Below are positions 40,691 through 51,801 of a DNA stretch of 64,000 bases, in pieces. The position numbers were made by a program, and so were the translations under genes. A model generated the notes under the pieces. It was given only the letters and a program-made list of their open reading frames with translations. It was not told where the DNA came from and made no database searches. How positions within the stretch are numbered: the first letter of the stretch is position 1; each line of letters opens with the position of its first letter. Origin of the DNA: Auanema rhodensis (Eukaryota > Animalia > Nematoda); contig OZ059899.1 of the NCBI GenBank assembly GCA_964057225.1, positions 15,190,001-15,254,000 on the forward strand. Reading direction: 5' to 3'.

Positions 40691-41096
40691 TGTCTGAAAG
40701 CAAATATAATTAAAATACGAAAATATTATAAAAATATACAAAATGAAATATTCATTTCAGCAAAATTTCACATACGCAAATTCGCAAATTTCACTTAAAC
40801 TTCTTGCGTATCGTGCCGAAAAACGTCAACATCTATTATGACGTCACGGAGATAGTCCGTTACTACCGGATTTCCATAAAAATATTCAAAGGGATAATGA
40901 AACAATAATAGTGACATAATTATTCGAGGGACATATTAAAATTTAAAACTTTTTTTACAAGCTCTTATGGCTTACGATGTTTTTCATGCATTTGAATTTG
41001 AATCTTTAATTTGAATTTTGAAGCCGATTAATTAATTTTATTCATTTTTTAGTTTGTAAAATAGATCTTGGATAACGCTTTAATTATTCCGTTGAA
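40691..41096. promoter_or_regulatory. Divergent BOP1 / smc-3 intergenic promoter
   Basis: 406 bp between head-to-head start codons; CRE palindrome TGACGTCA at 40839-40846; four TTTGAA (CHR-like) copies at about 40991-41022. Confidence 0.6.
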
Positions 41097-44000
41097 ATGC
41101 ACATTAAGGAGGTTTGCTTATGATGCTTTAAGTTTGAAAATAGGTTATGAAATTTTGTTAAGGTCAACATTGTTGATTTTCGAAGTTATCGAGATCAGAA
41201 TACTATAGACAGTTTTTCATCAAGGCACAATGTAATTGTTGGTAGAAATGGCTCTGGAAAATCCAATTTTTTTCTTGGTATCTCAAAAAAATTAATCCCT
41301 TTTTAAATTATATTTTCTAGCTATTCAATTTGTACTTAGTGATGAATTCAGCCACTTACGAGCTGAGCAGAGAATGAGTATGCTTCATGAAGGAACAGGG
41401 CCTAGAATTAGCAATGCCCGTGTTGAAATTGTTTTTGATAATAGTGATAGAAGAATCCCTGCGGTTGGTTCGGTGGAATAACCTCTGTAGCTTTGTTGTT
41501 TTAAGATTGACGCCCTGGAGGTCCGCATTACACGACAAGTAGGAAATAAAAAAGACCAGTATTTCATTGATGGCAAAGTAGTTCCACGAGCAGAAGTAAA
41601 ATTGAGTTTTTTGTATATTATTATATGATATAACTCTTAGGTTGTCAATCTCATGGAGTCTGCTGGTTTTTCTCGATCTAATCCTTATTATATTGTGAAG
41701 CAGGGAAAGATTAATGAACTTGCTACAGCACCCGACGCTTACAGGTACCATAAATTAAATAGTAGTTGGTTATGTTGTATTTTTAAGATTAAAATTGCTA
41801 CGAGAAGTTGCTGGTACTCGTGTTTATGATGAACGAAAAGAGGAAAGTGTAAAAGTACTGAAAGAAACACGTATGTTTTTGACTTTACATACTTTCTAAT
41901 AGTTACGATTTCAGAATTTAGAACTAAAAAAATTGAAGAGCTTCTTAAATATATTGATGAGAGGTTAAAAACACTCGAGGAAGAGAAAGAAGATTTGAAA
42001 GAATACCAAAAATGGGATAAAATGAAGCGTTCTATTGAATATACCATGAATGAAACCGACTTGCAAGAATCAAGAAAAAAATTAGAAAAACTAACAGACC
42101 AAAGAGAAGAGCTGAACCAACGTCAAAATAAGGTTTTTCTTCAGAATATAATAGTTTTTAATGTTTTTATCAATTCAGGTTAGTACTGAATTAATGGATG
42201 TACAAGCTAGAGGATTGCGAGCCTCTACTGAACAACGGAGGTTGGACTCACGGTTCAAGGGGATGAGGGAAGAAAAAGAAGCTTTGGTTACTGAACAGTC
42301 TGAGAGATATGAGAAAAAAACAGAACTGGAACTGCTTATCAAGGATCTCACTGAAGATGTAGACAAGTAATATATATTTTTAAAAATTATTGATAACTTT
42401 GAATAATAATTAGGGAAAGAACTGGTCGTAGCAAGGCTGAGACAGATTTGAATACATTGCTCTCTGAGATTAAGGACAAGGAAAGAGAAATTGAATCCGT
42501 TACTCCTCGTTACCAAGTTTGTTGATGTACGTTAGAGTTGAATATTGTTTTTGTTCAGGAATTAATTGAGAGAGAAGCTGCTTTAACTTCTGATATTCGT
42601 ATCGCTGAAATGAGATGTAAGGAACTTTTCTCCAAACAAGGACACAGGTAAAATATTTATTTTTCCTTGTTTTCTGAAGATCTATGTTATAGAGAACAAT
42701 TCAAATCTGCAGAAGAGCGTGATGAGTTCTTGAAAAGAGAAGTTCGTCAGATCAATAGACAAATCGCAGACGTCGAAGAGCAAATCACTGATATTGAAGG
42801 CAGCATTAAGGAAGAACAAGCCGAAGAAGAGAAATTGAATGGCCAAATAATGGTAACATATTCGTTTTAAGTTTTTTAAAATTATTCTTTATATTCTTTT
42901 CCAGGAAGTTGGTATGCAACTCCACGAAAATCATGACAAGTTGGAAAAACTTAGTAATGAACATGCAAATCTTAAAGCAGATTGCGATAAAGCTGTTGTT
43001 CTGCAATTGTAAAATTAATTTTTTTATATCTGGAAAAACTTCTTTCATTTCTAGAGATTCCAATCGCGGTGAAAAAGTCATAAGAGATCAATTAGCATCA
43101 CTACAAACTGAAATTTCTCAAATGGAACAGACTATGAGAACTATCGTTGCTCGTCCTACTATGCATGGAGTTGAGAGCGTGAAGAGAGTTGTCCAATGGT
43201 TCCGTGATAACAATCAAAACGGGAAATATGATCATGTTGTCAATGGATATTACGGTTAGTAGACTTCTAATCCACAAGTAATTTGACTAAATATTTCAGG
43301 AATCCTTCTTGATTTGTTTGAATGTAATGAAGCTTATTTCCAAGCTGTTGAAGTAACCGCCGGTAATCGTCTATTCTATCATGTAGTTGCTGATGATTCG
43401 TATGTTTCAATACTGAGTTGTTTTCAAATATGTTCATTAATTGCAGAGTTGCTACAATGATTCTTAATCAAGTCAATAGACTTGGTCTTCCTGGAGAGTG
43501 TAACTTCTATCCAATCAATCGTTTACCAAGACATCAACGAAGACATCTTCAGGAAAACGTTGGTTTTTGTCTTTACAAGCTGTTTGTAATGATTCATTCA
43601 GGATGCAAGACATATTTTGGCAGTTCTTGAATATTTACCTCAGTTTGAAACTGTTTTCTGCTCCGTATTTGGTAAAACCGCTATTGTTCGTAATTTGGAA
43701 ATAGGTTCGCGTTTGGCTAAAGGAGAAGGATTCGATTGTGTCACAATGGATGGAGATCAGGTTTACATCTGTGAAATATATTTTTTAACAAACTATCATG
43801 TATTAGGTCTCGAAAAGGGGAGCTCTTACTGGAGGTTATATCGATTCAAAAAAGAATAAGCTTGAAGTTCATCACAACATTGCCAATCTAGAAGATCAGA
43901 AGAAGCAACTTCAATCTTGTTTAGAGGATGAACAAAGAAAATCGTCTGCTTTGATGAACAATGTTGAAAAAATTCGTATTGATATTGACAGAGTAATCTA

Positions 44001-49400: not shown

Positions 49401-51254
49401 CTTAACTATTTAAGATTGAAAATGAGATGAGAATATCAAAGGAAACTCACCGTACATTAACTGAAAAGAAGAGATATTTGTGCGAACAACTTCATAGTAT
49501 GGGTCGTCTTCGTGAGCCTAAGGTAAGCTTATATCATATGTCTTTGTATATATTATGTGATTTTCTAGAATGCCCAATTGATTACTTTACGTAACAGAAT
49601 TAGGGAAACTGTTGCTCAGCGTGACCATTGCCAATCTGAAATCGGTACAGCTTTACTATCTCAGCTCACTCATCACGAGCAGGAAGAATGCGAACATCTT
49701 CAGGTATTTTGTGCTTCTTACTTATACTAATTGTATTGAAAATTCAGAGAGAAATGAGAGAAAAGAAACATCTTGTTGAAGAAGTTGCTCGAGAAAGAAG
49801 TACTCTTGAAATGACTAAAAAGAGGATTGAAAATCAGTTGACAACAAATCTTTTACGTAAAAGAGATAACTTATCTGCTGTAAGTAATACAGTAATTATT
49901 ATTTTCATTCATTTTTACTTCAGAAAGTTAATGATATCTCTGTCAGTGAAAAGAGATACTGCTTATCTTCGGAATCAAATGAGCTAAAATCAGTTACTCA
50001 AAGGTTACAAGAAATTGCTCGGCGCTTATCAGAGCTAGATGAATGCCTTATCGAGTATGAGGAATCTGCTGAAAAACTTGCCAGAGAACTTGAAGATGTT
50101 CAAGAACAACAAAAAGATCTCGAAGTTCAAATTTCGGACTTTTCCAAACAGGCTGATATCATTTGTACGAAGCAAAGTGCTCTTCAAACTAAAAAGGAAG
50201 ATTTACTGAAGAAATTGAGAGATATTGGATCCTTACCAACAGAAGCTTTTTCAAAATACTTAGGAATGAGTTCAAAGCAATTAGATAAGAAGCTTGAAGA
50301 ATGTTTGAATGAGCTTAAGAAGTATGAAAACGTTAACAAGAAGGTGAGTGTTTTCTTTATTTAATAAGTTCTATTCAATGTATTCAGGCCTTGGATCAAT
50401 TTGTTCAAGCTGCATCACAAAAGGAAGAACTGACAAACAGAAAGGAAGAGAATGCGAAGAGTCAAACAGTAAGTAATTCTTTTCAAACTTTCATGCTGAT
50501 GGCTTGTTTTAGTCAATCGAAGAACTTCTTAATGTTTTGGAGACACGTAAATTCGAAGCCATTAACTTAACATTCAAGCAAGTCTCCAAAAACTTCCGAG
50601 ATGTGTTTAAGAAATTAGTTCCTGATGGTGAAGGAAAATTAGTTATTCAAGCTGCTGGTCAAGTAATATTTTTATATTTTTCATAAGTATCTTTATTATT
50701 ATTTTCAGGATCAAAATGCAGAACAGGTTCATAGTGTAGAGAATTATACCGGAATAGGTATCAAAGTTTCTTTCAATGGTACTTCTGAAACTAGGGAAAT
50801 GCAACAACTTTCCGGAGGACAAAAATCTCTTGTTGCTTTGGCACTTATCTTCGCTATTCAGGTGATTTCGTTTTGAATCCTGTTTTGACTTCTTCATTCA
50901 GATGTGTGATCCAGCCCCATTCTACTTGTTCGATGAAATCGATGCTGCTCTTGATGCTCAGCATAGAAAGGCTGTTGCTGGTATACTTTACTATTGTTTT
51001 CGAATTTATGTATTTACTATTTGTAGATATGATTCATGAACTTTCTACAAACGCTCAATTCATTACAACTACTTTCCGACCTGAATTATTGGAACATGCC
51101 GAGAAATTCTACGGAGTTAAGTTCCGTAACAAGGTACTAATTGCATCGATGTTGTTTTACTAATTATATTTTTATTTGCCAGGTTTCACACATTGATGTT
51201 GTTTCTAAAGTTCAAGCTCATGATTTCGTCGAAGATGATCAAACACATGGTTAA
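46475..51254 (+). CDS. smc-3: Cohesin subunit SMC3, copy 2 (same predicted protein)
   Basis: Same exon-intron structure as copy 1; the observed differences are silent. An assembly artefact is not excluded. Confidence 0.85.
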
Positions 51255-51801
51255 AATGTTTTTTTACAAGTTTATGTAGCCTGATCTCTAATTATATATT
51301 CTGTTACACATTCTGTACTTACTGAAATCACATTAATTGACTTAACTGACGACTGAAAGGTTTTTTTCTCGATCTCATCAGTAATATGCGTATATTGACT
51401 GTAAATTGTTTTCGACTATGTATATTAAATTATTGATGTTAATATTCTTTCAAGTTATTTTTTTCTTAATTTCTATTACTAAAATATGAATACACTCAAT
51501 AAACACGCTTGGTTAAAAGGTGAAGTAAGTCACCATCTTCTCACTATTTCAGCTAAAGGAAAAGCTTATTCGTTATACATTGTTGGAAGAAAAATTCTTA
51601 TATATAACCGTACTCCTTTTTCGGTCCTCAGTGTTCGAATTACTGTCAACAGATATCCGCAGCTGTACGTAAAGGGACATTTGTTTTTAATTCTTGTTCA
51701 CTATCGTCCTGGTGTTTTCGACTGGCTGACTATCTCGCTGCTTTAACTCATTGTTGTTAATATTTTAATGACTACCTAATCATTAATTTTTAACTGGTAT
51801 A

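Follow-up and report, generated by a model that had tools for sequence, protein, structure and literature searches.

The 64,000-nucleotide stretch of Auanema rhodensis DNA analyzed here (assembly GCA_964057225.1, contig OZ059899.1, forward-strand positions 15,190,001 to 15,254,000; hereafter, the window) contains two head-to-tail copies of the gene for SMC3, the cohesin ATPase. SMC3 is an essential cohesin subunit and is normally encoded by a single gene. The two copies are nearly identical over their entire predicted transcription units, with identity ending abruptly in flanking DNA that, on the 3' side, is recognizably homologous and strongly diverged. This arrangement probably reflects an older tandem duplication that was later homogenized by non-crossover interlocus gene conversion. 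Its parts, in window coordinates, are as follows.

41007-46172, plus strand: identity block of copy 1, including 90 bp ahead of the ATG and 296 bp past the stop codon
46385-51550, plus strand: identity block of copy 2, with 3 substitutions relative to copy 1
46173-46384, no strand assigned: spacer between the copies, 212 bp, unique in the genome
46173-46265, plus strand: eroded DNA past the 3' end of copy 1; its homolog is 51551-51612, which lacks a 30-bp insertion present here
51551-51612, plus strand: eroded DNA past the 3' end of copy 2 (75% identity in ungapped columns, from 46 matches and 15 mismatches)
40990-41018, no strand assigned: (ATTTGA)n microsatellite that spans the left edge of the copy 1 block; likely the original left breakpoint

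Identity blocks and their limits

Each block is 5,166 bp long, the second starts 5,378 bp after the first, and they differ at exactly 3 of the 5,166 positions (0.058%; p-distance, 0.00058). In our gene model, the G/A difference at 41370/46748 (CAG/CAA at Gln60) and the G/A difference at 42027/47405 (AAG/AAA at Lys221) are synonymous, and the A/C difference at 41600/46978 is located in intron 4. All three are found within the first 1,021 bp of the block, leaving the last 4,145 bp perfectly identical; such clustering has a probability of 0.008 (one-sided) or 0.015 (two-sided). The preliminary description of this DNA had reported the same three differences, with the same codon and intron assignments and the same confinement to the first ~1 kb, and an exact alignment of the copies reproduced every one of these details. 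It had also reported an abrupt end of the identity, and at both edges the identity at the 5,378-bp offset indeed needs only a few bases to drop from 100% to background (22 to 38% per 100 bp). The end coordinate that it gave for the pair, 51580, lies 30 bp beyond the identical block, inside the eroded flank.

A DNA search of the 181-Mb genome (112 contigs) with the block shows smc-3 only at these two loci, and a protein search of the genome with the largest exon yields only two significant matches, both of them at these loci. Neither search revealed a third, diverged smc-3 copy anywhere in the genome, and the genome search showed no alternative haplotig or contig carrying smc-3. Both copies are located on a single contig of more than 15 Mb, and the window contains zero N. 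It contains no further long repeats, and an Rfam scan over 36-57 kb of the window detected no family of structured RNAs. Both copies keep all 26 introns, which eliminates a retrocopy origin.

Eroded homology past the 3' ends

Immediately beyond the two blocks, the 3' flanks can still be aligned. The alignment has 15 mismatches in 61 ungapped columns (Jukes-Cantor distance, ~0.30) and 33 gap columns, including a single insertion of 30 columns in copy 1. The local alignment score is reached by 0 of 300 shuffles and by 6 of 2,000 dinucleotide shuffles, and blastn aligns the pair with an E value of 6e-5. A 19-mer from the core of the flank, allowing at most 1 mismatch, is found in the 181 Mb only at these two equivalent places, with 0 matches for a reversed-pattern control. 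The spacer has no second occurrence in the genome, and the 150 bp that follow copy 2 have none either. Because the spacer, these 150 bp, and the 19-mer are all unique, the 3' similarity is, judging from the sequence, a relic of common descent and not a dispersed element; the uniqueness of all three sequences likewise rules out that the spacer derives from a transposon or another dispersed repeat.

The divergence of 0.06% inside the blocks versus ~25% in the adjoining homologous DNA therefore points to two ages rather than to a single recent duplication. Fisher's test on the mismatch rates of flank and block gives a P value of ~2.5e-31 with counts entered before the final alignment; the final counts of 15/61 differ from that input, and the conclusion is unaffected.

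Proposed duplication and conversion, and alternative explanations

A sequence of events consistent with these observations would start with the head-to-tail duplication of an ancestral segment that extended from ~41007 to at least 60 to 90 bp past the present block. The copies would then have diverged, and the trace left of this divergence would be the stretch past the poly(A) region, with its ~75% identity and 30-bp indel. Later, the 5.17-kb transcribed unit, including 26 introns and both untranslated regions, would have been overwritten by conversion, probably more than once. The confinement of the differences to the first 1,021 bp points to two or more events, the latest of which would have spanned the block's 3' four-fifths. 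The left edge of the block is probably the original duplication breakpoint, which the lack of detectable homology on the 5' side would fit, and conversion would stop there because homology cannot extend beyond that breakpoint. The right cliff is found just before the 30-bp indel, which might hinder the extension of heteroduplex. The positions of the breakpoints, and conversion as the cause of the identity, we infer from the two copies and their flanks.

Mutation rates of the C. elegans kind are ~2-3e-9 per site per generation (not measured in this species). With this borrowed rate, the last homogenization might date to ~1e5 generations ago and the divergence of the flanks to a few times 1e7, both as orders of magnitude only. 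The preliminary description attributed the near-identity of the pair to an old duplication kept homogeneous by conversion, perhaps under selection for cohesin dosage. Selection for dosage is pure conjecture, as conversion alone would explain the identity. The old duplication itself draws support from the 3' flank (15/61 mismatches versus 3/5,166), and none from the 5' flank.

Several observations weigh against conversion after an old duplication. The preliminary description claimed eroded similarity on both sides of the blocks; on the 3' side the shuffles, blastn, and the unique 19-mer bear this out, whereas the 5' similarity (AATTTGAATCTT versus AATTTTGAAATG) is matched or exceeded in score by 1,007 of 2,000 shuffles, and the matching letters that had been quoted fall in the (ATTTGA)n repeat. 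Over the other 119 bp of the spacer (46266-46384), similarity to the DNA downstream of copy 2 is not significant (P of ~0.07), and the evidence for an old duplication amounts to only ~60 to 90 bp of AT-rich flank. In addition, conversion tracts in Caenorhabditis average ~100 to 200 bp and reach a maximum of 2,958 bp in a genome-wide survey (PMC3966223). Against these values, a perfect tract of 4.1 to 5.2 kb is long, and several overlapping events or one unusually long one would be needed.

Some of these observations would fit a very recent partial tandem duplication of 41007-46172 only. The spacer would then be filler that template switching or end joining left at the junction, with the 3' resemblance arising incidentally from the repair. 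Nematode duplications are often partial and exclude the flanks, the absence of 5' homology agrees with such an origin, the position of the left edge in a microsatellite offers possible microhomology, and most of the spacer is without a detectable source. A review of conversion in Caenorhabditis paralogs cautions that a very recent partial duplication can likewise leave identical gene bodies next to unlike flanks (PMC3966223). However, the filler would need to include ~60 bases copied from just 3' of copy 2, in register, and these bases are only 75% identical, with indels; moreover, the 19-mer core is unique to two equivalent positions. Junction insertions are normally short and near-exact, which also counts against filler, and we regard a recent partial duplication as unlikely.

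The same near-identity could be a product of assembly or polishing, with a single gene falsely duplicated or with diverged paralogs homogenized by consensus polishing. False duplications and the loss of copy-specific variants in polishing do occur in assemblies, and the copies are told apart here by substitutions only. Nevertheless, the 212 bp at their junction are unique sequence, neither a gap nor an exact join, and share ancient homology with the other flank. The unduplicated flanks, the absence of 5' homology, and the lack of a third copy or an alternative contig argue against a haplotig pair or other false duplication. The 10.7-kb structure is within the reach of a single long read in this assembly of 112 contigs and 181 Mb, which also counts against an artifact, and polishing cannot turn ~25% divergence into 0.06%. 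An artifact therefore appears very improbable. Tandem arrays can also evolve in concert through unequal crossing-over, the classic alternative, in which the array shrinks to a single copy and then expands again. Contraction, however, deletes the spacer, and renewed duplication makes young, identical flanks, whereas the spacer here keeps an old, diverged 3' flank; this route appears less probable still.

The smc-3 genes and their product

Gene models were obtained with a dynamic-programming script that requires GT-AG introns, followed by manual correction. Searches bearing on the identity of the protein were run exon by exon, and the joined protein was used for counting only.

41097-45876, plus strand: coding span of smc-3 copy 1 (27 exons, 26 introns, 1,201 amino acids; our GT-AG model)
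46475-51254, plus strand: coding span of smc-3 copy 2 (the copy 1 model shifted by 5,378 bp; intact)

Copy 1 has its ATG at 41097 and its stop codon at 45874-45876, with 3,606 coding bases. The predicted proteins of the two copies are identical, and in both copies the introns are canonical GT-AG introns and internal stops number zero. The introns (41112-45804) are all 40 to 52 bp long, making this an extremely compact gene, with 4.78 kb for 1,201 amino acids.

Compared with solved structures in PDB, exons 3, 5, 16, and 24 match SMC3 chains only, with E values from 7e-20 to 2e-9. In the N-terminal head, every PDB match of exons 3 and 5 is to SMC3 (E values down to 7e-20), exon 2 matches the Pfam family SMC_N (42.4 bits versus a cut-off of 40), and the translation contains the Walker A motif GRNGSGKS. 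In the hinge region, exon 16 matches SMC3 hinge structures only (6wg4 and 2wd5; E value of ~2e-9); the Pfam hinge family was not detected on the two hinge-region exons scanned (13 and 16). In the C-terminal head, exon 24 carries the LSGGQKS signature and has PDB matches to SMC3 only (E value of 8.5e-15), and exon 25 carries the Walker B motif DEID. SMC_N matches on exons 3, 24, and 26 are below the threshold. By these matches, both copies are full-length, intact SMC3 genes, and both look functional. Both are presumably expressed. As the proteins are identical, the only possible functional effect of the second copy would be on dosage or regulation.

The nearest smc-3 match found outside this genome is a 1,414-bp Logan contig (SRR27155590), which is intron-less and transcript-like and covers the C-terminal part of SMC3, with 78% amino acid identity to exon 21. 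Other matches in the word search with exon 21 are distant fragments only.

Genomic neighborhood and expression of copy 2

The following features of the neighborhood bear on how the two copies might be expressed.

37500-40690, minus strand: upstream neighbor, a BOP1-like gene in divergent orientation (Pfam BOP1NT, E value of 1e-15)
52400-56000 (approximate), plus strand: downstream neighbor, an XPB/ERCC3 helicase gene (xpb-1-like)
41051-41052 (46429-46430 in copy 2), plus strand: putative trans-splice acceptor, a T run followed by AG, predicted from sequence only
46120-46125 (51498-51503 in copy 2), plus strand: AATAAA poly(A) signal

The putative acceptor is located 44 nt before the ATG of copy 1 and 45 nt inside the start of the block, and the identity of the blocks ends ~47 nt past AATAAA. 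The identical block matches the transcription unit almost exactly. From the ATG of the BOP1-like gene (~40690) to that of copy 1 there are 406 bp, and the duplication includes only the last 90 bp of them; the copy 2 block is preceded by nothing but the 212-bp spacer that follows copy 1. Copy 1 appears to sit on a divergent promoter region, and because the block starts 90 bp before the ATG, copy 2 would lack that promoter. The 406-bp intergenic region also contains a CRE-like perfect palindrome, TGACGTCA, at 40839-40846; it is outside the block, and copy 2 is without it.

It is feasible that copy 2 is expressed as a downstream operon gene, by read-through from copy 1 and trans-splicing, because it is on the same strand, its putative acceptor (46430) is located 310 nt downstream of the copy 1 AATAAA, and SL2 RNAs are encoded in the genome. 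The typical gap in C. elegans operons is ~100 nt, which the 310 nt here exceeds. Four SL2 RNA genes score above the Rfam cut-off, on C5, C1, and C3. The genome also contains a large tandem array of SL1-like RNAs (C3:6.74-7.10 Mb) with more than 50 matches of 54 to 62 bits, below the Rfam SL1 cut-off of 75, in which the spacing between many genes is a multiple of 252 bp.

It is equally possible that copy 2 is driven by a promoter in the spacer; one or the other of these routes most likely serves it. A CCAAT and a run of nine A's precede a 13-nt palindrome in the spacer, TACGCATTGCGTA (46333-46345). This palindrome could be a promoter element of copy 2 or a chance occurrence (~0.2 expected in 212 bp).

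More tentatively, the pair might represent a "self-operon." The promoter-less copy 2 would have survived through immediate trans-spliced expression from the promoter of copy 1, and repeated conversion, bounded on the left by the breakpoint and on the right by the flank indel, would keep the unit identical, resulting in a hard-wired double dose of SMC3. We consider this scenario rather doubtful as a whole. Expression of copy 2 by read-through would, if it takes place, be an example of promoter-less duplicates being rescued by trans-splicing.

Comparison with known systems

In C. elegans, the hsp-16 modules and the tandem collagen genes col-12/col-13 display the same pattern, which is the basis for inferring conversion and, for col-12/col-13, is confirmed by orthologs (PMC3966223). 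The neighboring paralogs in these cases are 99.5 to 100% identical over the open reading frame, including introns, with little or no similarity in the flanks, which is what the smc-3 pair resembles (PMC3966223). The extension of conversion into short nematode introns has been documented as well (PMC3966223). In contrast to hsp-16 and col-12/col-13, the proposed smc-3 conversion tract, at 5.17 kb and with 26 introns, is far longer and takes in the entire transcription unit of an essential, normally single-copy gene. The pair would be an unusually clean case of conversion, since the tract spans 26 introns and ends at a sharp cliff. The process is a well-known one, of which the pair is a further case, and the current understanding of the mechanisms is unchanged. 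For annotation, it serves as a warning that near-zero synonymous divergence (Ks) need not indicate a young duplicate and apparently does not do so here.

Among nematode SMC paralogs, SMC-4 has given rise to DPY-27 in Caenorhabditis, with an independent SMC-4 duplication in Pristionchus (PMC12629237). Like these, the smc-3 pair is a nematode-lineage duplication of an SMC ATPase gene (PMC12629237); however, the SMC-4 paralogs diverged and acquired an X-specific role in condensin, whereas the two SMC3 proteins here are identical and give no sign of a new function. Published nematode SMC surveys report duplications for SMC-4 only, and our literature search for SMC3 duplicates found nothing specific. 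Two intact, identical smc-3 genes would offer a natural test of the tolerance for cohesin dosage.

Centromere and kinetochore genes of Caenorhabditis are described as having recurrent, short-lived duplicates, some of them up to 100% identical in the conserved domain (PMC9577544). As in the smc-3 pair, these are lineage-restricted copies of essential chromosome-segregation genes (PMC9577544). That study covers CenH3 and kinetochore genes, not cohesin SMC3, and its searched text does not mention gene conversion. In trypanosome tandem arrays, promoter-less copies raise dosage through polycistronic transcription and are homogenized by conversion (PMC1855330). These arrays might serve as a working analogy for the promoter-less copy 2, although phylum and scale differ and operon expression is hypothetical here.

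Another gene in the window

On the minus strand at 29215-31422, the window encodes a PAN/Apple and ZP-domain cuticlin-like gene with an unusually long exon of ~425 to 438 amino acids. The best outside matches of this exon show 67 to 80% identity, with 67% to Diploscapter pachys and 72 to 80% to partial strongylid proteins, which would place the genome in Rhabditina.

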